Sequence record: OZ196593.1
Direction: 5' to 3' (one strand)
DNA length: 64,000 nt
The position numbers and the translations under genes were made by a program. The notes beneath the pieces were generated by a model. That model was not told the DNA's origin, did not search any database, and saw nothing but the letters and a program-made list of their open reading frames with translations. Below, piece after piece: positions 5,084-51,055 of the stretch. Position 1 is the stretch's first letter. Every line of letters starts with the position of its first letter.

Positions 5084-5120
5084 AAAGGGGTTGACGATTG
5101 TCAGCCCTTTTTGCTATATT
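5084..5120 (+). promoter_or_regulatory. Terminator hairpin fused with early promoter
   Basis: AAAGGGGTTGAC-GATT-GTCAGCCCTTTTT contains the -35 TTGACG (5091); TATATT at 5115; leader AGCTCTATCGAAACG...GAGAGCACATTATG. Confidence 0.8.
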
Positions 5121-5151
5121 AGCTCTATCGAAACGAACAAGAGAGCACATT

Positions 5152-16442: not shown

Positions 16443-16478
16443 AAAGGGTTGCTTCGGCAGCCCTTTTCGCGTTATATT
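16443..16478 (+). promoter_or_regulatory. Terminator hairpin fused with early promoter
   Basis: AAAGGGTTGC-TTCG-GCAGCCCTTTT holds the -35 TTGCTT (16449); TATATT at 16473; leader AGCTCTATCGAAACGAAAC. Confidence 0.8.
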
Positions 16479-16508
16479 AGCTCTATCGAAACGAAACGGA
16501 GCAACACA

Positions 16509-36450: not shown

Positions 36451-36464
36451 TGAAAATCACATAT
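36443..36464. promoter_or_regulatory. CRP box (perfect core)
   Basis: AAGTGTGATGAAAATCACATAT: TGTGA-N6-TCACA centred about -60.5 from the estimated start of the promoter at 36479. Confidence 0.7.
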
Positions 36465-36472
36465 TAAATATA

Positions 36473-36507
36473 CAGGGGTTGCATTGCAGCCCCTTTAACT
36501 GTAAGAT
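36473..36507 (+). promoter_or_regulatory. Hairpin-embedded sigma70 promoter
   Basis: AGGGGTTGC-ATT-GCAGCCCCTTT holds TTGCAT (36479)-17-TAAGAT. Confidence 0.75.
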
Positions 36508-36540
36508 GTATTCAGTTACTTAATTCAAGGGAATAAAACA

Positions 36541-37968
36541 ATGAAAAAACTAATTTTAGCATCAGTTGTTTCGACATTCATCTTAGCCGGTTGTGGTGGC
36601 GGAGGTTCTGAGGGTGATTGTGGCGATTGCAACGCACCTGATCCAACACCAACAACTACGATCACTGGTAAAGTGATTGATGGTTACGTGTCTGGTGCGA
36701 CAGTCTTCTTAGATTTGAACGCAAACTCTGAGCTAGATAGCGGTGAGCCGTCAACTGTGACTCAAGCAGCGGGCGCGTACTCATTAGATTTGAACAGTGA
36801 TCAAGACGCATGTGTTGGCTATGTTCCAATCGTGACTCACGTTCCAGTCGGTGCGATTGACTCTGACTACGGTGAAGTTACAGAAGCTTATACGATGGTT
36901 ACACCGCCAACGTTTGAGCGCGACGAGCCGCAAAACGTCACACCACTGACTACAATGGTTTGGCAAGAAGCAATTTCTGGTCTAGAAATGGATCACTCTC
37001 AAGCATACGCAAATGGCGGGTGTCAAGAGATTGCACAAAACGAAGAGCTTTACAATGAGCTTTCAACTCAACTTGACGCGTCAGTTATCGAGTTTCAACG
37101 AGCTTACAACATGACAGAAGAAGAAATCTTCTCTGATTATGTTGCACGTGGTGACGTTGAAGCGCACGCACTAGCAGCCGCAGCGGTTGAAGGTTTTCAA
37201 CGTGCTTATGCTGAACGCGCAGTCATGATTGAAGAAGGTAAGCACGTGTGGGCACACATGTATACGTATGTTGAACAAGCGAATGCAAACACGCGTAACG
37301 CTAACCCGTATTCATGGAAACTTCATACTGGTTATAGTGAAGATTTGAGTGCTGATTCTGCACGAACTTACTCAGAAATCACGCTAGTTGATGATCTTGA
37401 TGCTCCGATTAACACGTATGTTATCTTTGCAACTGACGTACTTGACGACAAAGTGACACTTGAAACATACGACCGCGTTGCTGTGAGCACTGGTTTCATC
37501 ATCGATGATAACGTATGTAAAGGTTCAGTTGGATTTGATGCACATGATAAACGCGGTGAAGCAACATACTACCGTCGCATGGCAACTGGTCATCTAGTCG
37601 ATTCAGTTCAAGCATGTGCTGATAGCTACGACACTACGCTTACTAACGACTCAATCGAGCAGTCTTCTAATCTAGAATACTTCTACATGGGTTCAGAGAT
37701 TGGCGGTTCGCCTGCAATGGCTTACGACATCTACGACGTTGACGGCATCATCGGTGAGCTTGACAACTGGTACATTGGTTACTATCAAGTTGATACTGAA
37801 ATGCCATTCGCAGACTGGTGGAGAAAGGGTGTACGTCTTCCTGAGAACGACTTGATGACTGAACACACTCGTGACATCGACGGCTACGAAGAAACAACAA
37901 TCTGGTACAACGACGGTACATACGAGCGTACTTGCTTTGTTGACAGCGTACCAACAACATGTAAATAA
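36541..37968 (+). CDS. Large acidic lipoprotein with bacterial-type N-terminal beta-sandwich
   Basis: Lipobox FILAGC followed by GGGGS; ITGKVIDGYVSGATVFLDLN.N..LD.GEP...T...G.Y pattern. Confidence 0.8.
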   Translation: MKKLILASVVSTFILAGCGGGGSEGDCGDCNAPDPTPTTTITGKVIDGYVSGATVFLDLNANSELDSGEPSTVTQAAGAYSLDLNSDQDACVGYVPIVTHVPVGAIDSDYGEVTEAYTMVTPPTFERDEPQNVTPLTTMVWQEAISGLEMDHSQAYANGGCQEIAQNEELYNELSTQLDASVIEFQRAYNMTEEEIFSDYVARGDVEAHALAAAAVEGFQRAYAERAVMIEEGKHVWAHMYTYVEQANANTRNANPYSWKLHTGYSEDLSADSARTYSEITLVDDLDAPINTYVIFATDVLDDKVTLETYDRVAVSTGFIIDDNVCKGSVGFDAHDKRGEATYYRRMATGHLVDSVQACADSYDTTLTNDSIEQSSNLEYFYMGSEIGGSPAMAYDIYDVDGIIGELDNWYIGYYQVDTEMPFADWWRKGVRLPENDLMTEHTRDIDGYEETTIWYNDGTYERTCFVDSVPTTCK

Positions 37969-37978
37969 CACGATATTG

Positions 37979-38001
37979 AAAGCTCCTTCGGGAGCTTTTT
38001 T
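37979..38001 (+). terminator. UUCG intrinsic terminator
   Basis: AAAGCTCC-TTCG-GGAGCTTTTTT. Confidence 0.9.
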
Positions 38002-38003
38002 CG

Positions 38004-38032
38004 TTTATAGTGTCGTATAAACATAGTACAAT
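38004..38032 (+). promoter_or_regulatory. Promoter region of the radical-SAM operon (late-like and/or sigma70-like)
   Basis: TATAAACA at 38016-38023 (7/8 to T4 late TATAAATA); also TTTATA-17-TACAAT. Confidence 0.45.
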
Positions 38033-38047
38033 GATGATGAGGTGAAT

Positions 38048-39271
38048 ATGAAAACTGGAAATATACGTACTGAAGACGACCCAATTTGTTTAGCGCCATT
38101 TGTAGGCTTGTTTAGCGCGCCTGCTAGAATGTCGCCGTGTTGTGAAATGGTTCACGACGGCTATAAAGACTTAGACGAAATGTGGAATAGTGATTTGATG
38201 AAAGGTCTACGAAAGAGCTTCATCAACGGTGACACTGAAAACATACCGAACTACTGCAAAGACTGCTTAAAGTCTCCAACGTCACATCGTGACTATTACT
38301 ATCTACCTGACCGGTCTTACTACAAAGAGACGTTTGAAAAATACAAGCACAGCGTGCTAGAAGATGGCACGATGACTGAAACTCCAATTTCATATCTTGC
38401 AATCGGTGTTTCGAACAAGTGCAATCTCGCGTGTCGTATCTGTTACCCAGGTATCAGCTCGAAACGTCAATCTATCGCTGAGTCAATCGGTGAAATCTCT
38501 GTAAAAGAACTGCTACCGAGCTTAGTCGATGAAAAATACGAAGCGGACAACGAACTAGATTACGAGAAGCTTCTAATTGAGCACTCAGACACGCTAGACG
38601 AGGTTGTAATACATGGCGGTGACCCAACGCAACACAAAGATCTTCCGTTTCTTCTAGACCTCTTAGAGAAGCATTTAAAGCCCGATTGTAAAATCAGCTT
38701 CTTGTCGAACGGTACATTTAGAAAGTGCATTGACGGTGAAGTAATCTGGGACAAGCTGCGTCGCTTCAAAAATCTGCATGTTGTGTTCAGCATGGACAGC
38801 ACGAAAGAAGTGAACGAGTACAGTCGTACGGGATTGAAGCATGACAGACTAGTGAAACTCATTTGGGAAGCTAAAGAAGCAATCCCCCATGCATACATTG
38901 GGTGTCACGCGACGTTGAACAACATGACCGTAGTTCGATTTGCTGAGTTCTTAGCGTATTACGAGAAAGAGTTTTTCGACAGGGGTGTGTGGTTGAGCTG
39001 TAACGTAGTTAACGGCCCAAAAGAATACAGCCCGTGTAACTTGCCTGTTAAGCTGCGTGCTCAAGTAATGATGGACTTGCATAAACTGAAGTTCGACCAC
39101 TGGCATATGGAAGAAATGCGACAATGGGCTATCAAAGCTGTGACGTTGCAACCATTTGATCAGCATCTTTGGAACAAGTTCTTAGTGAAAGAACAGAAGA
39201 TGGACAAACTTGTTGGCGATGACATGTTCGCTGTCTTGCCTGAATTTAAGGAATATCAATGCATAATGTAG
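38048..39271 (+). CDS. Radical SAM protein 1 with N-terminal twitch/SPASM-like Cys domain
   Basis: CLAPF..SPCC..CKDC; CNLACRIC; HGGDPT; SNGT; FSMDS. Confidence 0.92.
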   Translation: MKTGNIRTEDDPICLAPFVGLFSAPARMSPCCEMVHDGYKDLDEMWNSDLMKGLRKSFINGDTENIPNYCKDCLKSPTSHRDYYYLPDRSYYKETFEKYKHSVLEDGTMTETPISYLAIGVSNKCNLACRICYPGISSKRQSIAESIGEISVKELLPSLVDEKYEADNELDYEKLLIEHSDTLDEVVIHGGDPTQHKDLPFLLDLLEKHLKPDCKISFLSNGTFRKCIDGEVIWDKLRRFKNLHVVFSMDSTKEVNEYSRTGLKHDRLVKLIWEAKEAIPHAYIGCHATLNNMTVVRFAEFLAYYEKEFFDRGVWLSCNVVNGPKEYSPCNLPVKLRAQVMMDLHKLKFDHWHMEEMRQWAIKAVTLQPFDQHLWNKFLVKEQKMDKLVGDDMFAVLPEFKEYQCIM

Positions 39272-40194
39272 TGTTTATTTCAAGTATAGGTGATGCAGAA
39301 TATCATTCGATTGGTCGCGTGTTGATTGAATCAATTCGTTATAATTCTCCTAACCCGAATTATGATTTAGTGTGGTTCATGGATGGTGAAGAAGTTGATA
39401 TGTCAGACGTTGATTGTATAACTGAGCGGGTTACCGCGCCGGTTATGCCGAACCCATTTAATTACCCAGATACGTTTGTGTCTGGGTGTGCGATGAAAAT
39501 AATATGTGCTGAATACCTACAACAGCGCGGTTATAAACGCGCAGTCTCTATTGATTTCGATACGATAGTGAACATAGATTTGAATGCATTATTTGATCTT
39601 GACATGAACGACATTGAAATCGCAGGTGTTTCTGGTTGCGGGTGTGCGATGTTCAGTCATTATAGTGAAAAGCTGCCAAAGATCAGGGACATTGGTGATA
39701 CGACATCGAACCCTGACATGTTTTGCAATAAGCCCGAGACCGATGAAGCAATATGTAAACGAAAGTTTAATGGTGGGTTGTATGTATTCAATATGGACAT
39801 GTGTGTGTTCAATGATTACGTTGAGTTGTATAAGAGCAACCCGATGAGAAATAATGACGAGGATTATGTGGAGCGCACGTTCACGAAGAAAATGATGCTC
39901 CCGCGTGAGTTGAATTACTTTGTGTTGTTTGGGGATCAGTTAATCAGACAGAACCCAGCTCTATACAAAAAAATTAACCACGACGCGTATAGCGCAAGTA
40001 TTATGCACTATCAGTATGTTTCTAAGCCATTTCATTTTGAAGGGCCCGGGAATCTGAACAATGAGCTTCATAGTCCGGTTAAGTATTTTAAATATTTTGA
40101 CCGAGTTCGTGACAAAATGCCCGACGTGTTTTGTGACAATGTTGATGCTTTCAAACGCTATTATAATGATGAACTGATAATGAGGTTGCGATGA
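39259..40194 (+). CDS. Glycosyltransferase family 8-like (GT-A)
   Basis: SIDFDTIV (DxD), FNGGLYVFN, IMHY...KPF. Confidence 0.85.
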   Translation: MHNVVFISSIGDAEYHSIGRVLIESIRYNSPNPNYDLVWFMDGEEVDMSDVDCITERVTAPVMPNPFNYPDTFVSGCAMKIICAEYLQQRGYKRAVSIDFDTIVNIDLNALFDLDMNDIEIAGVSGCGCAMFSHYSEKLPKIRDIGDTTSNPDMFCNKPETDEAICKRKFNGGLYVFNMDMCVFNDYVELYKSNPMRNNDEDYVERTFTKKMMLPRELNYFVLFGDQLIRQNPALYKKINHDAYSASIMHYQYVSKPFHFEGPGNLNNELHSPVKYFKYFDRVRDKMPDVFCDNVDAFKRYYNDELIMRLR

Positions 40195-41351
40195 AATGTA
40201 CATTACCATTTGATGGTTTTTTCGTAAACGCGATGGGAAAATTTTCCCCGTGCTGTGCGTTGTCTGTAATGAACGAAGACAGCAACGAGGAATCATCTAT
40301 CACGATTGACATGGATGGTGATTTCATAAATCACGAACGCATGGTCGAGCTACGCAAAGAACATGCAAGTTGTGATATCAAAAATCAGACATGCATCGAC
40401 TGCATCGCGAGATATAAAGGTAGTGACACGTTTAATAGTGATTTGGTGAGTGGTGAATTGCCTGACACATATGACGCAGACACGGGTCGAATATCAACGC
40501 CAGATTTCAAACATTTGAATGTCGCGTTTAGCAATCGCTGCAACTTAGCATGCCGTATGTGTTCTTCGATGAACTCTAATAAGTTTGGCGAAATGATGCA
40601 CAACAAGATTCGATTACAAGACATTATCTACTTGTCTGATCAGTGGTATAACGAAGAAAATCCAGGTAAAGTAAACAACGCATTTGATGATGATAGTCTC
40701 GGGTACTTAATAGAACATAGCCAGAACACTGACACCATAACTATTCATGGCGGTGAACCCTTTCTCGAACCGAGAGTCGTGCAGTTCCTTGATTCTGTGA
40801 AGAAAACGAAGAAGTTATACATCACAACTAACGGAACTCGTAAACCAAGGCAAACTATAATCGACGCGATTAATAATAACAACTCAGGTATAATGTTCAG
40901 CATCGAGGGTACGAAAGATGTACAGGAATATGTTCGAATCGGATCGAAGATGAGCGACATTTGGGATAATATAGCTTACATACGAGAGAAGTGCCCGAGT
41001 GCTGAGTTTTACACGAATACGGTTGTCACTGCGTACAACTGGCTAGATCTGGCTGATTTCATTCGTTTAGCACCTGAGTTTTCGAAGTTCGGGGTGGTAA
41101 ATATGTTCCTTGATTGGAACGCCACATATAGCCACATTGATTTCTTTCATGTTCTGAGCGAAGAAGATTTCAATGAGGGTAAGTCTAGACTTACTAGAGT
41201 CATGTATGATATACATCACATGGATATCCCAGAACGTCTAAAGCAGTCATGTAGAAAGTCAGTTCAGCAATTCGTTCATGCTAAATATCAACCAAATGAA
41301 CGTCTAAAAGGTCACTTTAATGAGTACAATAAACAAGTCGATGATTTGTAA
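40191..41351 (+). CDS. Radical SAM protein 2 (same architecture)
   Basis: CTLPF..SPCC..CIDC; CNLACRMC; HGGEPF; TTNGT; FSIEG. Confidence 0.92.
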   Translation: MKCTLPFDGFFVNAMGKFSPCCALSVMNEDSNEESSITIDMDGDFINHERMVELRKEHASCDIKNQTCIDCIARYKGSDTFNSDLVSGELPDTYDADTGRISTPDFKHLNVAFSNRCNLACRMCSSMNSNKFGEMMHNKIRLQDIIYLSDQWYNEENPGKVNNAFDDDSLGYLIEHSQNTDTITIHGGEPFLEPRVVQFLDSVKKTKKLYITTNGTRKPRQTIIDAINNNNSGIMFSIEGTKDVQEYVRIGSKMSDIWDNIAYIREKCPSAEFYTNTVVTAYNWLDLADFIRLAPEFSKFGVVNMFLDWNATYSHIDFFHVLSEEDFNEGKSRLTRVMYDIHHMDIPERLKQSCRKSVQQFVHAKYQPNERLKGHFNEYNKQVDDL

Positions 41352-42450
41352 AGCACCGTTCACGTCTCAAGTAGTGTGGACTAGTGGCGAAGTTCAGATG
41401 TGTTGTAATGATCAGCCGAGTGAAAAGCAATACAGCTTAGAAGATGAATGGAACAGTGAGTCGCGCAAACAAGCACGACGTGAATGGTTGTCGGGTGAGA
41501 TTCCCGACCGTTGTAAGTCATGCGTGAAGCGTATGGAATCTGGTGATGCTACTCTCCCTGTTTGGTATGACAAGATCATCGAAACAGTTGAGCTAACCGA
41601 AGAAGTATCAATGCCTGTTTATCTGCATATGAGTCCGTCGAATCAGTGCAATCTCGCGTGTCGCATGTGCAACGGTGAGATATCAAGCACGTATGACAAA
41701 CTGATATGTGATTCATCGAATGGCGAACGACACAATGACATCGTTGAATATGTGAAGAAATGCTTGCCAAAGCTTGAGCACTATGTTTTTCACGGCGGTG
41801 ACCCGATGTTCTACAAAGACTTTCTTCGCGTTGTCGAAGTGCTGAAAGGGCGTAAAGATGATTTGTACATCAACGTAATCACGAACGGCACGCATCACAA
41901 GTCAGATGGCGTTGATATGATACCGCATTTGAAAGAGTTCAAGAACTTGAAAGTGACGTTTTCGATTGACAGCATCGGCAAGTACAACGACTACATGCGT
42001 ACTCTGACCAAGACGAGTCGCGTTGTTGACAACTTCAATAAATGGTGTCGCGAAGTTCCTCATGCAGAAATGTCTATACACACCATAACGACGAACATTT
42101 CTTCGCTCGGTATCGTTGAGCACTTGCGCAATATATACAACAGCGATATGTTTGACCGAGTTGATGCGTTCAGTCATTTCATGGTTGACTGGCCAGTTGA
42201 ATATCGCGTACACAATCAACCACCTGCGATGCGTCAGCGCGTGCTAGATAGCATCAATGAATTTCGCGATGAAGTCGAATCGTATATCGGTGCAGATATT
42301 GAAACTGCTAAGAACATTCTGATTAATATTGAGCGACAATTCGAACGACCATTTGACATTAAAGAATGGGCAATGTTCTTGAAGAAGAACAAAGAACACG
42401 ATGTACTGAGTAAATCAGACACGAGTATAATTGAAATTATGAAGGTCTAA
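41320..42450 (+). CDS. Radical SAM protein 3 (start may be 41341)
   Basis: CKAPF..QMCC..CKSC; CNLACRMC; HGGDPM; ITNGT; FSIDS. Confidence 0.92.
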   Translation: MSTINKSMICKAPFTSQVVWTSGEVQMCCNDQPSEKQYSLEDEWNSESRKQARREWLSGEIPDRCKSCVKRMESGDATLPVWYDKIIETVELTEEVSMPVYLHMSPSNQCNLACRMCNGEISSTYDKLICDSSNGERHNDIVEYVKKCLPKLEHYVFHGGDPMFYKDFLRVVEVLKGRKDDLYINVITNGTHHKSDGVDMIPHLKEFKNLKVTFSIDSIGKYNDYMRTLTKTSRVVDNFNKWCREVPHAEMSIHTITTNISSLGIVEHLRNIYNSDMFDRVDAFSHFMVDWPVEYRVHNQPPAMRQRVLDSINEFRDEVESYIGADIETAKNILINIERQFERPFDIKEWAMFLKKNKEHDVLSKSDTSIIEIMKV

Positions 42451-42451
42451 A

Positions 42452-43537
42452 ATGAAGAAAATTGGGATTATGATTGACGGCTATTTTGTGTCGTCTGGTT
42501 CTGGCATTAATACGTACGTACGTCACTTGTGTCAGACGCTGATTAAAGATCTTGGTTATGATGTGACGCTGTTCGTCGATACTCCGATTGAAGAGAAAGT
42601 GAGTCTCAATCAATACAACAAAATCGGTGTGAATATCGTGAACGCAAACGAGAACTATCGCGTGCGTACGTTCACTGCGTCATTCGAAGAGAATCACGTA
42701 GCTAGAGTATTCAAAGACATTTGTCAACCGTGGGTCGATGAGCATAAGCCAGTCGCGATGATTTCTCATAGCTACGGAACTGCTCTTGCTGTGCGCGACT
42801 TAGAGTTCGATGGTAAGAAATGCATCGTCACTCATATCGGTGATGTAATGGCGCCTGACTTACCCGACTTGTGGGACTTTGAAGATCATACAGTGCGCAG
42901 CTTCTTGCAATCGCTTGACAATAACGACATTGATTTGGTGTGTCAGACAGAAGGGATTGTGGACAATCATCTTAAAGTGCTGAAGAATCGCGACCGAAAG
43001 AGTTGTATTGTGTGTCATGAACCATTTCACGTTGCGATTGACCGACAGCTTAGACCTGTTCGTGAGGGAGCGATTGTAGTGGCGGGTAATTACAAGCGTA
43101 AGCGACTGCACGACGTGATCGATGTGTGCGCTAAAGCTGACATACCCTTGACGATAATCACGGGCGATAAGACGGGTTACGGCGAAGATTTAGACATGTA
43201 TTGCATCAAGCAAAAGGTTCGATACAACATCATCGAGAAACTAGCGAACGATTTCGTTGTTCCTCAGATTAGAAGTCATCGAATCATGATTCACTTGAGC
43301 GACATTGAAGTGTGTCCGTACAGTGTAATCGAAGCGATGCCGTACGTGCATTGTTTAGTGAAGAAAGGCGCGCCGTGGACTCACAAGTTTTACCCTGAAT
43401 ACACGACGCGAATCGATTTAGATGACATAGACATCGTAAAAGATGCCTATGAGAATTACGACAAGTACGAGACAATGGATCTCGCTGAGTATCAGAAGTC
43501 AGTTAACGACTCATGGGAAGCTTACTTGAGTTCGTGA
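42452..43537 (+). CDS. GT-B fold glycosyltransferase (GT4-like)
   Basis: N-terminal GSGINTY..L...L...GYDVT; C-terminal E-X7-E (IEVCPYSVIEA). Confidence 0.75.
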   Translation: MKKIGIMIDGYFVSSGSGINTYVRHLCQTLIKDLGYDVTLFVDTPIEEKVSLNQYNKIGVNIVNANENYRVRTFTASFEENHVARVFKDICQPWVDEHKPVAMISHSYGTALAVRDLEFDGKKCIVTHIGDVMAPDLPDLWDFEDHTVRSFLQSLDNNDIDLVCQTEGIVDNHLKVLKNRDRKSCIVCHEPFHVAIDRQLRPVREGAIVVAGNYKRKRLHDVIDVCAKADIPLTIITGDKTGYGEDLDMYCIKQKVRYNIIEKLANDFVVPQIRSHRIMIHLSDIEVCPYSVIEAMPYVHCLVKKGAPWTHKFYPEYTTRIDLDDIDIVKDAYENYDKYETMDLAEYQKSVNDSWEAYLSS

Positions 43538-44784
43538 AGTTCATCTTGAAGTTTGAAAAGGGCGATTAGATTATCGTCCTTTTCTTTTAAGTGCGTTGAG
43601 TAATCGCCTGTCCAAAACTCACAAGCTGAAACCGCAGCTTGATACACAAAGTTTTCCAATTCACCGTAGCGTTCTGCATACGGTTCCAACTCATCAATGA
43701 GTATTTTCAAACGTCGTACCGTGTCATCTAGAACTTCTGGTGCGAGATCTTCGACAATCAGCTCTGGTCTACCCGTCACATATTCAAATGAACAGCAATT
43801 CACACCCATATCTTTATACTCAGTCAATATTTCGCGTAGAAACTCTGGCATATGCGGGTATGTGATGCGTGTAACGCACGCTGCGATGTTGTAACACACT
43901 TCAGGGTTGTAAGCTATGTATTCACGCAAATTCTTCTTCACGTGCTCTGTGTTCGTTCCTAGACGCTGGTAGTCATTTATCTCTGCAATCGAATCGATGC
44001 TGAAATTCACGACATGTAAGTTGGGTTGGTCAAGCATTGTTCGAATACGGTCATTCAGCTTGATCGTACCATTCGTCACGACACCAATTTCACTTGTGCT
44101 TTCAACGATGAAATCAATCGTCTTGTTATTCATCAATGGCTCACCGCCAACTACCGATGTGATCGTGTGACTGTCAGTGTATTTGTGAATCGTAGATGGG
44201 TTGATTTCTTTCTCAAGTGGCACGAAACATGCTTCGACGGAATTCAATTTCTCGCTTTGTTTACGAGCAGTCGGATGTTTGTCGTATTTCTTGCGAATCT
44301 TATTTGATGCATATGAATTACACATGCGGCATTCGAGGTTACAATTACTGCCGAAACTGATTACATTGTTTTTCAGTTTGACGTTTGTATTGTCGTAATC
44401 CCATGAACCATCTTCGCCAGTCTCAACGAAAATATCTTCAGCATCTTGACCGCGCAATAAACGCAATCGACTTCGATGTTCTTTTGACACTTCATCACAG
44501 AAAACAGTTTTACCCCGAGTTTCGATACACTGAGCGCACACTTTATTCATCGGCTGTTCGCCAATCATTTGCAAGCGTAGATTTTTCATCGCTTTTGTGT
44601 TCATATCTTTGTTGAGTTCGAAAGGCGTGTCGTCGTAGACATACTCAGGGTCGAGTTCTTTCATGTGAGCTGACAGCCAACAACAAGGGGCGATTTCATT
44701 GTTCGCCCCAATTTGCAGACCAGCCCAGGGATAGTGACACGGAACCGTATCAGGAATTTGTGGCGTGGCGTATGTGTTCTGCAT
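43522..44784 (-). CDS. Radical SAM protein 4 (same architecture)
   Basis: CHYPW..APCC..CAQC; CNLECRMC; GGEPL; TNGT; FSIDS. Confidence 0.92.
   Translation of the reverse strand: MQNTYATPQIPDTVPCHYPWAGLQIGANNEIAPCCWLSAHMKELDPEYVYDDTPFELNKDMNTKAMKNLRLQMIGEQPMNKVCAQCIETRGKTVFCDEVSKEHRSRLRLLRGQDAEDIFVETGEDGSWDYDNTNVKLKNNVISFGSNCNLECRMCNSYASNKIRKKYDKHPTARKQSEKLNSVEACFVPLEKEINPSTIHKYTDSHTITSVVGGEPLMNNKTIDFIVESTSEIGVVTNGTIKLNDRIRTMLDQPNLHVVNFSIDSIAEINDYQRLGTNTEHVKKNLREYIAYNPEVCYNIAACVTRITYPHMPEFLREILTEYKDMGVNCCSFEYVTGRPELIVEDLAPEVLDDTVRRLKILIDELEPYAERYGELENFVYQAAVSACEFWTGDYSTHLKEKDDNLIALFKLQDELHELK
43556..43588 (+). terminator. Terminator of the plus-strand operon, inside the 3' end of the convergent gene
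   Basis: AAAAGGGCGAT...ATCGTCCTTTTCTTTT. Confidence 0.6.
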
Positions 44785-45763
44785 ATTTTTTATCTCTCAT
44801 TTCAATAATATTTTCAAGTAACTCTAGGTGCTCTGCATTGCACATTTGACCTAGCAGTCTTTCATCGTCTTTGAGATATTTAATAAGCAAAGAAAAGTCG
44901 GCACAGAATATACCCTGTCCCAATCGATGTAGAGGTACACCAATCTGCATTTCTTTTTTCACACGCTCGAATTGATAGTGGAAGTATTTTTGTTCATACA
45001 GATACTGAACGATTCGACGGTCTTCTGTGTGATGACGTGTCAATTCGCGAATGAAATCTTCTTCAGTTTCCATATGGTTTAGATGTGTCCACGTACGTAT
45101 GTTGTACGCGTTACTGATCACTTTGAAATTGCCATTGATCATGATGTTCAAGAACTCTTGATCACAATATCGTTGATAGTACAAGTCGCACCACATTCTG
45201 AAATCTGGTAGATTCAGCTTGCGCCATTCTGCACAGTCAGCAACAACAAGCCCTGCATTGAACGTCATCGGTACTGATTTAAGTAGCGCGATGAACTTTT
45301 CGCTTGCATCGGGGTGATCTAGATTGCGCCAGTAGTCATAATGACCGTCCATGCCGAAATCTTTATGCCAATCCATGTTACTTGCCATCGGTTTACCCTC
45401 AAGATCGCAAGTCACTAACTCGTCAAGATTGCCACACGCAACCATATCTAAGTCGAAGTAGATGGCGCGTTCATATTTCCCCTCACGAGCTGCGTGCTCT
45501 AATGAGTCAGGACAAAGACTGAACGCAGGTAAAGCAAACGCTTGATCCCCGTCTAATCCCTCAAGATCATGTTTCGGTAGTTCGATGATCTCGACTGGGA
45601 ATTCATCTATAACACATGGTACAGTTTCAGCATCATTCGTGTACCAACGATAATCAACGTCTTCAGTAATATTGTCATGAATTGAGCGAAGTACGATATT
45701 ACCCCACTTCGCATAGTCAATGTTTTGGTTACTGGTAGCGACGTACACTACGCATTTAGCCAA
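44750..45763 (-). CDS. Glycosyltransferase family 8-like (GT-A); TTG start after GGAG RBS
   Basis: YFDLDMV (DxD), FNAGLVVAD, DQEFLN, AYN motifs. Confidence 0.85.
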   Translation of the reverse strand: MAKCVVYVATSNQNIDYAKWGNIVLRSIHDNITEDVDYRWYTNDAETVPCVIDEFPVEIIELPKHDLEGLDGDQAFALPAFSLCPDSLEHAAREGKYERAIYFDLDMVACGNLDELVTCDLEGKPMASNMDWHKDFGMDGHYDYWRNLDHPDASEKFIALLKSVPMTFNAGLVVADCAEWRKLNLPDFRMWCDLYYQRYCDQEFLNIMINGNFKVISNAYNIRTWTHLNHMETEEDFIRELTRHHTEDRRIVQYLYEQKYFHYQFERVKKEMQIGVPLHRLGQGIFCADFSLLIKYLKDDERLLGQMCNAEHLELLENIIEMRDKKYAEHIRHATNS

Positions 45764-46835
45764 TGTATTTCTCCCAAGGTGAAGCATCCCACGAAGAGCG
45801 TACTTCTTTTTCAGAAACAGAGAACGTGTCAACGGTCTCAATCAAAACGCCAAGAACTTCAACGGGATCGCTGTAATCTGAAATGTCGATTACTGAATCT
45901 TTGTCAAGGTCGATGTCAGCGCCTTTCAAAATGTATTTGTACGAGTCGATGACGTTTTCAGATACCGATTCGATGTTGTGCAAGTTGTAGTCGATAACCA
46001 TTGCAGCTTCACACAAGTCTTTCACTTCAGATGAATCAATAGTCGTGATGATATCGATTTTGAAACCAAGCGGTGCGACCGACTGTAGAATCGAATCAAG
46101 CTCGTCTTTCTGATTACACACAATGCCCAATGAGTTCGTGTTGATGACGCTTACAAGGTCATACAGCTCGATAAATTCACGATTTACGATATCATTCAGC
46201 TCTGGACGAACGTTGTCGATGTACAGTTGAGAATGGGGAATCGACCAAGTGATATTTTCAAGGTCATTTGTACACTTGCCGCTGAAGCTCAAGCACTTCT
46301 TATCAGTCCCGCCAAGCTTATTGATCATGTGATCTGCTTGCTCAGAGAATGACACGAATGTTTGAATGCTACCAAAGTCAGCCGTTTCGTCAGTCAACCC
46401 GTCGAAAATAAATGCTGTTTTGTACTTTGATGATAGATGACGCACAAGCGTATCTTCGCGCAGCGGTGCAAGTAAGATAATCTTTTTGAAGTTCAGACGA
46501 TTCAACGAGTTTACCGAAAGCTGTAGTCGTGAAATATCGCGCACAGCGTCTTCGTAGTTCATCGTATCATCAACCATAATCGCGATTGTCGAACCGTCGA
46601 TATCAACATTGGTATCTTCTTCACGAATTCGAAGCAATCCCCATTCGAATTCAATCTGTTCTTTCGTAACTTCGATGATGTTGTCAAAGCTGTCTTTCAG
46701 TGTTGCGCACTTAGCGTCAGCGTCACACTCAAGCACTTCATACGTGCGGTCATCGGGGTCAAGTGAAGACACGACATAAAGCATTTTCTCTTGAAAATAC
46801 TTCGGATTGTCGCGCAGTTCTTTAATCGTTATCAT
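45756..46835 (-). CDS. Acidic hypothetical protein, possibly a degenerate Rossmann/GT-A-like fold
   Basis: 359 aa; alpha/beta pattern TIAIMV...LSVNSL..KKIILL; coupled to both neighbours. Confidence 0.6.
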   Translation of the reverse strand: MITIKELRDNPKYFQEKMLYVVSSLDPDDRTYEVLECDADAKCATLKDSFDNIIEVTKEQIEFEWGLLRIREEDTNVDIDGSTIAIMVDDTMNYEDAVRDISRLQLSVNSLNRLNFKKIILLAPLREDTLVRHLSSKYKTAFIFDGLTDETADFGSIQTFVSFSEQADHMINKLGGTDKKCLSFSGKCTNDLENITWSIPHSQLYIDNVRPELNDIVNREFIELYDLVSVINTNSLGIVCNQKDELDSILQSVAPLGFKIDIITTIDSSEVKDLCEAAMVIDYNLHNIESVSENVIDSYKYILKGADIDLDKDSVIDISDYSDPVEVLGVLIETVDTFSVSEKEVRSSWDASPWEKYIG

Positions 46836-47509
46836 GTTTTAATCCTATTTTTGAACACAAGTGACATGTAAGAGTATGAACCCGAAATGCCGCCTGTCTG
46901 ACTGCCATAACTATTTGATACTGTGCCTAACGACGCGCCACTTTTGTAACCTGCTAGAGACGTGCTTGTTGTATTGAACACAGCGTAACCAGAGTTTGCG
47001 TGATAAATGTAGTAGTACACTCTATATAGTGTCGCAGTACCGTACCATGCACCCCATGATGGGTAACGACCACTATCCATTAGACCTTTAACAGCAGCTA
47101 AGTTTGTGCTTCCGTCTTTCACGTAAGCCCACGTGTTGTAGCCGCCACTCGCCCCTGATACTGTAATTGAACGACTTGTGTTGTTATTGATCCATGAACC
47201 AACTGGTGCATAGTAGAACGTACCGTCGATGTTATCGTAACGTTTCGTCGTGAACTGAAAACGTACTTGAATCGCGTCCATCCAAAGACCGTGATTGTCG
47301 CTCGTAGCTGAACCGGCTAGGTTGTACATTGACACTGCGCCATTGTCTGGCATTAGTGTATCGCCGTTCGTACCCCAGTATGTGTAACGCGGCAATTGAT
47401 TGGCAGTTGAAACCGACTGAGTTGACGTGTGTACTTGACGGTAGTTGCTCAATGCAGTTCCGTAGTTCTTACACCAAGCGTCACGAATCGCTGTAATTGA
47501 AACACTCAT
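46832..47509 (-). CDS. Late Gly/Ser/Thr/Tyr-rich protein; putative tail-fibre adhesin or virion appendage
   Basis: Composition; P..GAVSMYNLAGS resembles the N-terminal attachment motif of gp38-like adhesins; perfect late promoter upstream. Confidence 0.55.
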   Translation of the reverse strand: MSVSITAIRDAWCKNYGTALSNYRQVHTSTQSVSTANQLPRYTYWGTNGDTLMPDNGAVSMYNLAGSATSDNHGLWMDAIQVRFQFTTKRYDNIDGTFYYAPVGSWINNNTSRSITVSGASGGYNTWAYVKDGSTNLAAVKGLMDSGRYPSWGAWYGTATLYRVYYYIYHANSGYAVFNTTSTSLAGYKSGASLGTVSNSYGSQTGGISGSYSYMSLVFKNRIKT

Positions 47510-47554
47510 TATTAATGTCCTCAGTGTTTAAAATTGAAATAAGTAGCTATACAA

Positions 47555-47562
47555 TATTTATA
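47555..47562 (-). promoter_or_regulatory. T4-type late promoter
   Basis: TATTTATA on plus = TATAAATA on minus, 45 nt upstream of the 47509 start. Confidence 0.75.
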
Positions 47563-47584
47563 GTTAACACATAGCGAGAAAATC

Positions 47585-48055
47585 ATGAGAAATTATAGCG
47601 ATCTACTGTTCAACGTACTGACGAATGGTCGTCCAGTATCAAATACTGAAATTCAATTGCAAGGCGTTACGTTTGAACACAGCGCGCCACACGCCCCAAT
47701 CACGTGCATGTTCGATCATGAGATCAAGTTCGAAGAAGATGAAACTCACGTAATCGATATGATTGACGAGTTGACCTATGTCAAGCAAGTCGGTGTTGTG
47801 TCGCCTTTACAGATGTATATTGAGACTGTTCACGGCTACTTAAATACACTGTATCGCTCACAAAAGACTGGACAGCCAGTCGGTCGCATCGTCATTCAAG
47901 CTGAAGCAGTTGAAGTTAAGCGCGAAGACATGGACGCGTATTTGAATATCATCGGTAAAGAAATGGTGTTCGGGCCGCGTCTTGAAGGGTCGCCAGTAAC
48001 GGCAGAATTCGTTGACGGTGAGCTGAAATTAAACAACTTCAATATCATTGGGTAA
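47585..48055 (+). CDS. Truncated or degenerate thymidylate-synthase-fold protein
   Basis: YSDLLFNVLTNG resembles the TS N-terminus; QKTGQPVGRIVI and GPRL...NFNIIG resemble the TS C-terminus; catalytic PCH absent. Confidence 0.45.
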   Translation: MRNYSDLLFNVLTNGRPVSNTEIQLQGVTFEHSAPHAPITCMFDHEIKFEEDETHVIDMIDELTYVKQVGVVSPLQMYIETVHGYLNTLYRSQKTGQPVGRIVIQAEAVEVKREDMDAYLNIIGKEMVFGPRLEGSPVTAEFVDGELKLNNFNIIG

Positions 48056-48060
48056 AATAA

Positions 48061-48510
48061 ATGAAAAAACTTCTTGCAATTGCTGCAACAGCACTGCTAT
48101 TATCAGCTCCAGTTCAAGCAGATGACATTTCGCTTCACATCGGGTCATATACACATGCGTGGGATGACGACCGAATGAACGAACAGTCATTTAACATCGG
48201 TGGTCGTTATGAAGACTTCGCGTTCGGTTACATTGATCGCAACGTCTTTGACAATCACAGTGTTTATGCTTATTGGAACCCTCGCGTTTACAAGTCAGAA
48301 CATTTCGACTTCGGCTTTGCACTTGGTGCACAGACGGGTTGGGAAGATGACGCTTGCTACGACGGCTGGGGTTATGAAGACAAATTTACAATCGGTGATC
48401 ATATTGCACCGCTAGTTGGTCTGACAGCAGAAGCTAAAGTCGGTGACGTTGGCATTGAAACTGTCATCACGCCTATGCTAGTGCGTACAAACTTTGTGAT
48501 TCACTTCTAA
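48061..48510 (+). CDS. Secreted small outer-membrane beta-barrel, PagP-like
   Basis: Signal peptide (VQA/DD), alternating beta strands, H..D..R.NE...GG and FDFGFALG motifs, C-terminal Phe. Confidence 0.55.
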   Translation: MKKLLAIAATALLLSAPVQADDISLHIGSYTHAWDDDRMNEQSFNIGGRYEDFAFGYIDRNVFDNHSVYAYWNPRVYKSEHFDFGFALGAQTGWEDDACYDGWGYEDKFTIGDHIAPLVGLTAEAKVGDVGIETVITPMLVRTNFVIHF

Positions 48511-48520
48511 GGGTGAATAA

Positions 48521-49327
48521 ATGGAGCTAACAGAATCGATTACAGTTCATGGTCGAGCGTTGCACACTGAGAAAGCGGTTGGGGTGATTTTACACCCCGC
48601 TGAACACGGCATATCATTTACGATTAAAGGGGCTACTTTTCATAGCTCGTCGCGCTCAACCGTTTCGAAAGAACTATGTTCGATGATGATGTTTGATATC
48701 AAACGTCATGTTCTGACGTACGAACATCTTTTAGCTGCACTGAATCAGTTGCACATCCCGAACATTCGCATTGAATTGCTTGATGGTGCAACTGAACTGC
48801 CAATTCTTGACGGTTCCGCTCAGGGTTGGGTTGATTTGTTGAAGTACAACATCAAGTCGATGGGGCAGACTAAATTTAATCAGATTAAATTAATCAAGCC
48901 TGTTACTGTGCGCGATGGCGATGCGTATATCATTGCGCTACCGTCACGTGAGCCGGTTTACTCGTACGAGCAAAACTTCGATCTTCACGCGACTCAAAGC
49001 ATGACGAGAATGAAAATGTTCAACTTGTCTCGCGGTGATTGGTTTGATATCATGGCTGAACCGACGATTACCGTCGAAGGCATGGGCAACGAGCACAAAT
49101 ACAACACTGGTTTTTCGAATTACATCTCCGACGAAAGCACGTCGTGCCATCGCGACTCGCTTGTAAATCACAAGTTACTAGACTTGATCGGTGATACGTA
49201 CGCAAACGGTATGCGCTTAATCGCAGACATCGAAGCGTACAAAACGGGTCATTCGCATAACAACATGTTGATGCGAAAGATATTGAGTGATGAGACGAAT
49301 TACATCATCGTTCAAAAAGAAGTTTAA
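48521..49327 (+). CDS. lpxC: LpxC-family Zn-dependent deacetylase
   Basis: G..LHT.K, TYEHLLAAL, ELPILDGSA, NHKLLDLIGD, AYKTGH..N: all catalytic and Zn motifs present. Confidence 0.9.
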   Translation: MELTESITVHGRALHTEKAVGVILHPAEHGISFTIKGATFHSSSRSTVSKELCSMMMFDIKRHVLTYEHLLAALNQLHIPNIRIELLDGATELPILDGSAQGWVDLLKYNIKSMGQTKFNQIKLIKPVTVRDGDAYIIALPSREPVYSYEQNFDLHATQSMTRMKMFNLSRGDWFDIMAEPTITVEGMGNEHKYNTGFSNYISDESTSCHRDSLVNHKLLDLIGDTYANGMRLIADIEAYKTGHSHNNMLMRKILSDETNYIIVQKEV

Positions 49328-49387
49328 CAGCAACAAAAACTGACTCATAATAGAGTCTCAATCAATCGCATATTTGGGGAGTCCATC

Positions 49388-50947
49388 ATGCAAAAATTAA
49401 ATAAAGTAACACAAGCAATCGGTCAAATTCAAAACATCGGAACAGGCACTAACTTCATTGGTGCGTCAACTAACATCGTAACGGCAGTTGACAGTTATAA
49501 AGTCTCACACTGGTCACAATTCCCACGCGGTCTTGAGATCAGCCAATATTACGTCGAAAGCCGAGGCGGCAAGTTCGACAAGATTATGGTCGATGGTATT
49601 GCACGTATGTGTCGTATTCTCGAAAAGGGTGTTTCGAAAGGTGATGTAGCGTATGCGAAGCGATTGTTCAAGAAGCACTTTGGTTCTGAAGTGTTCAATG
49701 ACAAGGGGTTTGATATCATCGTCAACGAACTGAACGGCAAACTGCCAATCAAGATTCGTGCGGTGAAAGAGGGCATCGTCGTGCCGACAAAACACCCAAT
49801 CTTGACAGTTGAGAACACAGATTCACGTTTCGGCTGGTTACCTGGCTATCTTGAAACGTTCGTCTTGCGTGCTATCTGGTACCCGACTACAGTAGCGACT
49901 ATTTCGTTTGAAGTTAAGAAAATCATCCGCCAGTACATGAAGAAGACTGTAGATGATGAGCTTATCCCTCAACTCGAACCGTTTAAGCTTCACGACTTTG
50001 GAGCACGTGGTGTCTCTAGTGCAGAATCAGCAGCGATTGGCGGCTCTTCTCACTTGAAAAACTTTTTAGGCACTGACACGGTAGAAGCACTGGTTGACGT
50101 TGAAGAGCTTTACGGCGATGATTTAGAAGATTTCATCGCGGGATTCTCTATCCCTGCACGTGAGCACTCAACAACAACAATCTACAAGAAAATGGGCGAA
50201 GACCTAGCGTTCTTGAACTCGATTGACCAATGGGGTGGCGGTCTATACGCTTGTGTAATGGATTCATACGATTACGAAGCAGCTATGGAACGTGTATCAA
50301 CTGGTCGATTCAAAGAACTGATCATCAGTAAAGGCGGAACGTTCATCGCTCGTCCTGACTCTGGTGTGCCAGTAGATGTAGTCATGAAAGGTCTAGAAAT
50401 TCTCGGTAAGAACGTTGGCTACACAGTCAATAGCAAGGGCTACAAAGTGTTACACCCTAGCTACCGCATCATTCAAGGTGACGGTGTGAATATCGAAGAG
50501 ATTCGCAGAATCTTAGACTTCATGGAAGCTAAGGGCTGGTCTGCGGAAAACATTGCATTCGGCATGGGTGGTGGTTTGCTTCAGCAATCTGACCGTGATA
50601 CTCAACGTTTCGCAATGAAAATGTCAGCAGCAATCATCAACGGTGAATACGTTTCTGTGTTCAAGATGCCAAAGACTGACCCAAGCAAAGCTTCTAAAGC
50701 GGGATTCTTGGATCTTATCGCGGTAAAACCAGACGAGCCAAACCCAGCCGCACGCGGTTATGTTACTGTCTCGACTGAGAGCTATGAATCACGCGTACAC
50801 CCGAACAGTGTTATGGTGACTGTGTTTGAAGATGGTGAAACAGTTTACGACTTCTCACTTGCAGAGGCGCGCCACTTCTCTGACGAACAAGCGAACTTTC
50901 TTAACGAAGGCGAGTGGAAAATCAATAAAAAGCCATTAACGGCTTAA
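49388..50947 (+). CDS. nadV: Nicotinamide phosphoribosyltransferase
   Basis: DSYKVSH, LHDFGARG, GTDT, EHS, DSYD, RPDSG, IQGDG, FGMGGGLLQ, KTDPSKASKAG. Confidence 0.96.
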   Translation: MQKLNKVTQAIGQIQNIGTGTNFIGASTNIVTAVDSYKVSHWSQFPRGLEISQYYVESRGGKFDKIMVDGIARMCRILEKGVSKGDVAYAKRLFKKHFGSEVFNDKGFDIIVNELNGKLPIKIRAVKEGIVVPTKHPILTVENTDSRFGWLPGYLETFVLRAIWYPTTVATISFEVKKIIRQYMKKTVDDELIPQLEPFKLHDFGARGVSSAESAAIGGSSHLKNFLGTDTVEALVDVEELYGDDLEDFIAGFSIPAREHSTTTIYKKMGEDLAFLNSIDQWGGGLYACVMDSYDYEAAMERVSTGRFKELIISKGGTFIARPDSGVPVDVVMKGLEILGKNVGYTVNSKGYKVLHPSYRIIQGDGVNIEEIRRILDFMEAKGWSAENIAFGMGGGLLQQSDRDTQRFAMKMSAAIINGEYVSVFKMPKTDPSKASKAGFLDLIAVKPDEPNPAARGYVTVSTESYESRVHPNSVMVTVFEDGETVYDFSLAEARHFSDEQANFLNEGEWKINKKPLTA

Positions 50948-50977: not shown

Positions 50978-51013
50978 AAAAGGGTTGCTTCGGCAACCCT
51001 TTTTGCGTATTAT
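50978..51013 (+). promoter_or_regulatory. UUCG terminator hairpin fused with early promoter
   Basis: AAAAGGGTTGC-TTCG-GCAACCCTTTTT holds TTGCTT (50985)-17-TATTAT; leader AGCTCTATCGAAACGAAAC...GAGAGAACATTATG. Confidence 0.85.
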
Positions 51014-51055
51014 AGCTCTATCGAAACGAAACGACGAAAACAAAGAGAGAACATT

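Follow-up and report, generated by a model that had tools for sequence, protein, structure and literature searches.

A predicted LpxC-fold enzyme without the canonical acyl tunnel in two lytic Vibrio phages

Background

LpxC catalyses the step that commits bacteria to lipid A synthesis. The family is regarded as having a single function and as a major antibiotic target, and its specificity is attributed to the tunnel formed by Insert II. The occurrence of an LpxC-like gene in a lytic phage raises the question of whether its product acts in lipid A synthesis, as the name suggests, or whether the LpxC fold is more plastic than this view allows, a possibility that would surprise LpxC specialists. 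The gene in question lies in the Vibrio phages K566 and K567 (OZ196521, OZ196593). The DNA analysed here, a stretch of 64,000 nucleotides from OZ196593.1 (hereafter the window), is 100% identical to both, in agreement with the original prediction that the gene is phage-encoded.

K566 and K567 are T4-like phages of ~255 kb belonging to Schizotequatrovirus, and their isolation host is Vibrio crassostreae (PMC12028318). The gene, labelled 'hypothetical protein' in GenBank, received an automated eggNOG description corresponding to the LpxC reaction (Supplementary Table S8, ISME J 2025, PMC12028318), and the published annotation files it under 'lipid A biosynthesis' (PMC12028318). Its bare LpxC homology is already on record in that supplementary table, and our literature search found no paper describing a phage-borne LpxC as an auxiliary gene. 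What is new here, as predicted from sequence comparison and structure modelling, is an LpxC-fold enzyme devoid of the acyl tunnel in a lytic phage. The finding concerns a singleton lineage. A tunnel-less variant with its catalytic machinery would show how far the LpxC fold can be repurposed, and would extend the accessory gene repertoire of large marine phages by a new kind of enzyme.

Results and Discussion

The phage gene and its assignment to the LpxC family

The gene was found as originally described, a plus-strand open reading frame with an ATG start:

48521..49327, plus strand: LpxC-family (CE11-type) open reading frame, 268 aa plus stop, ATG start; VPHK566_0314 (also written VPK566_0314)

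A Shine-Dalgarno-like site, GGGTGA, is found 4 nt 5' of the ATG, and 10 bp separate the gene from the one before it. The protein matched the Pfam family PF03331 (LpxC) in two stretches, with an E-value of 1.3e-40 and a score of 140 bits (gathering score, 27). Its score for the NCBIfam equivalog TIGR00325 was 115.3 bits, and the cut-off of 187.25 was not reached. Sequence matches in the PDB were LpxC chains without exception (E ~7e-19). An AlphaFold2 model built from a 56-sequence alignment reached a mean pLDDT of 82 and a pTM of 0.83, and when it was compared with the PDB by Foldseek, a search in which a different fold would speak against LpxC identity, the top 50 matches were all LpxC (50/50; E ~1e-20, TM 0.75-0.80). 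The fold was not found in the viral protein structure library BFVD, where the model had no match at E <= 0.001. The two-domain beta-alpha-alpha-beta fold and the zinc and acid-base residues are those of bacterial LpxC (PF03331, TIGR00325, CE11; 4MDT, 3P3E, 3NZK). The phage protein differs from these enzymes in carrying a shorter polar loop in place of Insert II, in falling below the equivalog cut-off, in lacking a lipid A or ftsZ neighbourhood and in being encoded by a lytic phage.

The position of the protein within the family was assessed in an alignment of 286 sequences, comprising the query, the Salmonella LpxC (which shares E. coli numbering), 267 database homologues and 17 copies from viral contigs. 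Its median identity to the sampled family was 32%, and the closest sampled member shared 37% with it, the lowest such value among all 286. In 5.8 billion protein clusters the best non-self match showed 35-36% identity, self being represented by two contigs, and among 1.84 billion representative proteins the best matches reached 33-40% over the aligned stretches. Close relatives were found neither in these clusters and representatives nor in IMG/VR or among 50,697 phage records, and the copies in K566 and K567 are identical to each other. The nearest homologue (P0002) lies on a contig of just 2 kb with an uninformative context; from these sequences the donor lineage of the gene cannot be named.

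Conservation of the catalytic core

The family HMM recognizes two blocks of the protein, which carry the catalytic motifs:

48527..49000, plus strand: residues 3-160, domain I and first half of domain II (family HMM, 122.5 bits); E68-H69 at 48722-48727
49130..49318, plus strand: residues 204-266, C-terminal block (family HMM, 69.6 bits); H217-K218-x-x-D221-x-x-x-D225 at 49169-49195 and K241-x-G243-H244 at 49241-49252

In LpxC, zinc is bound by H79, H238 and D242, while E78, T191 and H265 are critical for catalysis (PMC13333357). The corresponding zinc ligands of the K566 protein are H69, H217 and D221, each position being shared by 285-286 of the 286 sequences. The acid-base pair is kept as E68 and H244 (E. 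coli E78 and H265) with D225 (D246) as its supporting Asp, and K218 (K239) and G243 (G264) are retained as well; E68-H69 constitutes the general base and first zinc ligand. D97 (D105) and K241 (K262) are also present, and an aromatic residue is retained at the F161 position as F153. The columns of E68, H69, D97, H217, K218, D221, D225, G243 and H244 are conserved in 235-286 of the 286 family members. The EH, HKxxD and KxGH motifs, which the original prediction had read as intact, are indeed present as E68-H69, H217-K218-x-x-D221 and K241-x-G243-H244, in columns that are invariant or nearly so.

A deep mutational scan of E. coli LpxC named the twelve residues least tolerant of mutation (PMC9842644); the K566 protein keeps seven of these positions, which make up the zinc and acid-base centre. 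Across the family, 33 columns are conserved at >=90%, 27 of them outside Insert II, and 23 of these 27 are kept in the phage protein; R230 (91% conserved) and E234 (99% conserved) are replaced. Since this many conserved columns outside the insert survive at an overall identity of ~32%, the sequence argues for continued selection on catalysis.

A different reading would be that of a catalytically idle remnant, or of a binding or decoy protein, derived from an old capture whose substrate-binding insert has decayed. The extreme isolation of the protein (<=37% identity), the loss of its substrate-binding element (see below), the replacement of E234 and R230 and the confinement of the gene to two near-identical phages would all fit this history. 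We nevertheless consider it very unlikely, given that the reading frame is unbroken, is preceded by a ribosome-binding site and is closely spaced within its operon, that the core of the AlphaFold2 model is confident, and that one would not expect every zinc and acid-base residue, together with most conserved columns outside the insert, to survive neutral decay.

Replacement of Insert II

The two conserved blocks enclose a segment of a different nature:

49001..49129, plus strand: residues 161-203, remodelled Insert II equivalent, 43 residues against 53 profile positions, homology undetectable

The hydrophobic tunnel that accommodates the acyl chain is formed by Insert II, which also has a share in substrate specificity (PMC13333357). 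In E. coli LpxC the loop R190-G193 contacts the glucosamine (PMC9842644) and has a part in oxyanion stabilisation, G210 and A215 line the acyl groove, and R190, T191, F192, G210 and A215 are among the residues least tolerant of mutation (PMC9842644). When the family HMM, made without the query sequence, was aligned to the K566 protein, residues 3-160 and 204-266 were recovered as two separate domains and residues 161-203 were left unaligned. The segment between F161 and H238 (E. coli numbering) spans 63 residues in the phage protein, compared with 76 in Salmonella and a family median of 74; it is 11 residues below the median and shorter than in 284 of the 285 homologues. Both parts of the earlier description of this acyl-binding region, as diverged and about 10 residues shorter, are thereby confirmed.

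The loss extends to positions that are otherwise nearly fixed. The K566 protein keeps only one of the six Insert II columns conserved at >=90%, and even that one (G172) stands in a doubtful alignment, whereas the median for the other 285 sequences is six of six. The R-T-F-G loop columns are 95-99% conserved in the family and the phage protein is gapped or misaligned there; equivalents of R190, T191, F192, G210 and A215, and of the G-G/A-S strand, could not be recovered. Its short P-T-I-T-V strand was placed in three different registers by three aligners, and with this ambiguity T182 or T184 may stand in for T191. An Arg or Lys equivalent of the glucosamine-contact loop was not evident in any of these alignments.

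The structural model agrees with the alignments in this region. Residues 186-206 show pLDDT <50 and no beta-alpha-beta element. Only 14% of these residues are hydrophobic; the family has a median of 44% and does not otherwise fall below 29%, so that the segment is the least hydrophobic of 285 members. The low pLDDT of the replaced loop may reflect the scarcity of homologues rather than true disorder, and the loop may still offer an unconventional acyl-binding surface.

A compensated double frameshift masking a canonical Insert II was discarded, as every DNA frame was negative against the family HMM. A second apparent case of a tunnel-less LpxC among the homologues (P0137, 249 aa), the single exception in the length comparison above, was likewise set aside: it is a gammaproteobacterial-type LpxC of otherwise canonical type from which a clean internal deletion of ~58 residues has removed Insert II and the adjacent strands, and probably represents a defective gene copy or an error of assembly.

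These observations bear on the reading of the protein as a true LpxC, which would hold the acyl chain in some other way and, freed of the FtsH degron and of the region contacted by LapB, would evade host control and raise or sustain lipid A synthesis. The LpxC fold and the complete catalytic set speak in its favour. Because E. coli LpxC cannot do without the missing residues (R190, T191, F192, G210 and A215), a true, deregulated LpxC becomes less likely; the marked polarity of the replaced segment and the missed equivalog cut-off weigh in the same direction, and we regard this reading as unlikely. The first of the two functions originally proposed, that of a degradation-resistant LpxC, is weakened on these same grounds.

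The C-terminal tail

In the K566 protein 24 residues follow the catalytic histidine, compared with 40 in Salmonella and a median of 22 across the family. An FtsH degron characterizes LpxC of the Enterobacteriaceae type, and many lineages are without it (PMC12444477). As the median tail is this short and many lineages dispense with the degron, the short tail of the phage protein is the family norm and not a special feature; the earlier remark that the C-terminal tail is missing holds relative to enterobacterial LpxC, but does not single the protein out. The tail shows only that the K566 protein, judged by its sequence, would not be a client of FtsH/LapB in the way that E. coli LpxC is.

The areas through which LapB contacts LpxC are the degron and a region near the hydrophobic tunnel (PMC12444477). 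The absence of an enterobacterial-type degron, combined with a remodelled tunnel region, would suit a true LpxC that escapes this control (PMC12444477), but a degron absent from so much of the family is no adaptation and says little about resistance to degradation. With both contact areas missing, a role as a decoy for LapB or FtsH is also unlikely (PMC12444477).

LpxC homologues in other viruses

Among the 50,697 records of isolate phages, K566 and K567 were the only ones with an LpxC-family gene. Three other matches in the isolate collection were rejected as phage LpxC, being bacterial contigs with ftsQAZ-lpxC. One of these misfiled contigs, AFYI01000001.1 (L003), belongs to Salmonella Infantis SARB27, and the others (L004) are the 'Acinetobacter phage MD-2021a' contigs CAKLQH020000013.1 / CAKLQF020000016.1.

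In IMG/VR, LpxC relatives were identified at 19 loci. At least eight marine contigs (L006-L013) carry an LpxC copy of 304 aa, which in one of them (L009:7983-8897) lies between genes for a phage exonuclease, an endolysin and SSB, with neither ftsZ nor ftsA nearby. Further copies occur on L005, L014, L018, L019 and L021, as well as on two giant-virus MAG contigs (L016, L017). All are virus-carried members of the LpxC family, as is the K566 protein, to which they are only 25-31% identical. Unlike it, they keep R-T-F-G(F), G-G/A-S and an Insert II of normal length. By sequence, the viral-contig copies are apparently true, working LpxC, and it is the K566 protein that deviates. Their existence implies that phages can profit from LpxC activity, which would be in line with a true LpxC in K566; yet the phage contigs with an apparently true enzyme are precisely those that retain Insert II.

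Non-standard architectures were also found among the homologues, in which the LpxC domain is fused to a response-regulator receiver (PF03331+PF00072) or to FabZ. The sampled fused proteins keep at least four of the six conserved Insert II columns, in contrast to the single in-doubt column of the single-domain K566 protein.

Genomic context of the LpxC-like gene

The LpxC-like gene sits at the right edge of a variable island, as the last gene of a three-gene operon:

36453..49362, no strand assigned: variable island specific to K566/K567, 12.9 kb, with flanks 97-99% identical to sister phage D480
47527..47555, plus strand: sigma-70-like promoter match TTTAAA-17-TACAAT (9/12; a consensus match only), in the divergent intergenic region upstream of the operon
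47585..48055, plus strand: 156 aa orphan, first gene of the operon; family, PDB and phage homologues were searched and none found
48061..48510, plus strand: small secreted protein of 149 aa, Sec signal peptide, C-terminal ...HF; 10 bp upstream of the LpxC-like gene

At the same site D480 carries a different cassette, of 9.9 kb and with QueC-like genes. The GC content of the island (43.2%) equals that of the remaining phage. Besides the operon, the island codes for a 475 aa protein of unknown function, four paralogous N-terminal-twitch radical-SAM proteins (NF033640), two GT8 proteins, a GT-B-like protein of 361 aa and two unknowns of 359 aa and 225 aa. The neighbouring glycosyltransferases (GTs) invoked in the original prediction are therefore real, namely the two GT8 genes and the GT-B-like gene, although comparison of the GT8 and GT-B proteins with the PDB gave a single weak match, to WbbM (E 0.004). 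A defence or anti-defence role for the island proteins was rejected, PADLOC having returned only one weak viperin-like match, to a radical-SAM protein. Whereas bacterial lpxC copies lie in ftsQAZ-lpxC clusters, no lipid A or cell-division genes (lpxA/D, fabZ, ftsZ) surround the K566 gene, whose neighbours are the orphan and putative barrel pair and NAMPT.

The 149 aa neighbour deserves separate consideration, since its label of 'PagP', if right, would point back towards lipid A. From its Sec signal peptide and its C-terminal aromatic residue, of a kind typical for barrels of the outer membrane, the protein is probably an outer-membrane beta-barrel. Its PagP name comes solely from phrog_3600 (E 1e-13, C-terminal half of the profile), and no PagP match was obtained in Pfam, NCBIfam or the PDB with either the single sequence or a 7-member profile, for which reason the identity was rejected. 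A word-index search recovered the protein itself only, and a single-sequence AlphaFold2 model was unusable (pLDDT 31). Its family is small, with single scattered copies in Vibrio, Aeromonas and Stenotrophomonas phages (L028-L033), and has N40, G47, N61, S67, D83, G89, G93 and P117-L118 as invariant residues. The 'PagP' annotation spreads through RefSeq phage records via phrog_3600. Because the label derives from this one profile, the lipid A theme of the operon is without independent support. The published assignment to 'lipid A biosynthesis', which would otherwise favour a true LpxC, can thus be corrected: it joins an unsupported PagP label to an LpxC homologue that fails the tests of a canonical LpxC.

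The relationship of the gene to the rest of the island was examined through homologous modules. The core of radical-SAM, GT-B and 359 aa genes has a syntenic counterpart in a phage contig of metagenomic origin (L024), with 36-58% identity over six genes, and reduced modules occur in L025, where the module has a GT8 gene and lies beside tail-fibre genes, and in L026 and L027. The LpxC-like gene, the barrel and the orphan are absent from all of these modules (L024-L027). The three-gene operon, moreover, is divergent from the neighbouring minus-strand block and has its own promoter match. Given both this arrangement and the homologous modules, the LpxC-like gene is better seen as an add-on than as a conserved member of the GT module, and a role inside the radical-SAM/GT pathway is unsupported by the sequence comparison.

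This affects the proposal that the protein makes a free-amine nucleotide sugar, for example UDP-GlcN from UDP-GlcNAc, for the GT8, GT-B and radical-SAM enzymes of the island. The gene does share the 12.9 kb island with two GT8, one GT-B-like and four N-twitch radical-SAM genes, and the protein retains K218 and K241, which flank the nucleotide/sugar site, and the aromatic F153, while the acyl tunnel is lost. The occurrence of L024 and the reduced modules without an LpxC-like gene, and its location in a separate divergent operon at the island edge, argue against such a supply, and with the glucosamine-contact loop not conserved the sugar itself may differ. We consider this specific version, a sub-case of the explanation favoured below, to be quite unlikely.

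Proposed function of the K566 protein

The explanation that we favour, albeit with modest confidence and from sequence and model together, is that the K566 protein is a cytoplasmic LpxC-fold zinc amidohydrolase, probably active and no longer specific for UDP-3-O-acyl-GlcNAc. Insert II, which in true LpxC provides the acyl tunnel and the glucosamine loop, has given way to a shorter, polar and probably flexible loop. The substrate would carry no long acyl chain and may not present glucosamine in the canonical way, and the bond hydrolysed would be an amide, in the simplest case that of an N-acetyl group. Soluble nucleotide amino-sugars and N-acetylated glycan intermediates are candidates. Expression would take place from an early-type promoter, jointly with the orphan and the secreted small barrel. 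The product may serve the adjacent GT/radical-SAM island, or the reaction may deplete or divert a host envelope precursor.

The second function originally proposed, a neofunctionalised deacetylase of non-acylated UDP-GlcNAc supplying the neighbouring GTs, agrees with this explanation in its general form, since the tunnel is gone and the core intact, and fits better than a degradation-resistant LpxC. UDP-GlcNAc as the substrate amounts to a guess, the R190-G193 loop being unrecoverable, and the supply to the GTs is weakened by the modules that do without an LpxC-like gene.

Sugar N-deacetylases of glycan pathways are known from the LmbE/PIG-L type (CE14) and the PgaB/IcaB type (CE4), which have unrelated folds. 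By analogy, the K566 protein may work as these enzymes do, removing N-acetyl groups in a metal-dependent manner from a non-lipidated amino sugar in a GT-rich cluster; it had no match to CE14- or CE4-type families in Pfam or NCBIfam searches. A further step, which we put forward only as a tentative possibility, is that it would represent the first LpxC-fold (CE11) enzyme outside lipid A chemistry, a zinc deacetylase of a non-acylated N-acetyl compound that either builds an unusual glycan with the island or diverts a host precursor.

Additional features of the island and its surroundings

The combination of a GT-B-like gene with two to five paralogous N-terminal-twitch radical-SAM genes (NF033640), sometimes accompanied by GT8 and the ~359 aa unknown, recurs in unrelated phage contigs, its sites being the following:

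38042-46835 of the window: radical-SAM/GT module of K566/K567
L024:10001-21198: radical-SAM/GT module adjoining terminase, GroEL and SAM-lyase genes
L025:8716-13343: radical-SAM/GT module
L026:1150-7173: radical-SAM/GT module

KVP40-like Vibrio phages carry ~3 distant paralogues apiece.

The right boundary of the island (49362/49363) falls 25 bp 5' of the NAMPT start codon (window 49388-50947), and the NAMPT of the sister phage (L002:13984-15585) is annotated as 42 bp longer; the cassette swap may have altered the 5' end of NAMPT or its promoter. An intergenic repeat of 56 bp occurs at 16443-16498 and 50979-51033 (91% identical), the latter copy just 3' of the NAMPT gene, and a 23 bp core of it is found also at 5115-5137; it may constitute a shared regulatory element. 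Finally, the T4 late-promoter consensus is matched exactly only once in the 64 kb, at 47555-47562 on the minus strand, a number that is not significant against ~1.8 matches expected by chance. This site falls in the intergenic region between the divergent genes, and 46 bp separate it from the minus-strand block downstream, which comprises the 225 aa, 359 aa, GT8 and radical-SAM genes.
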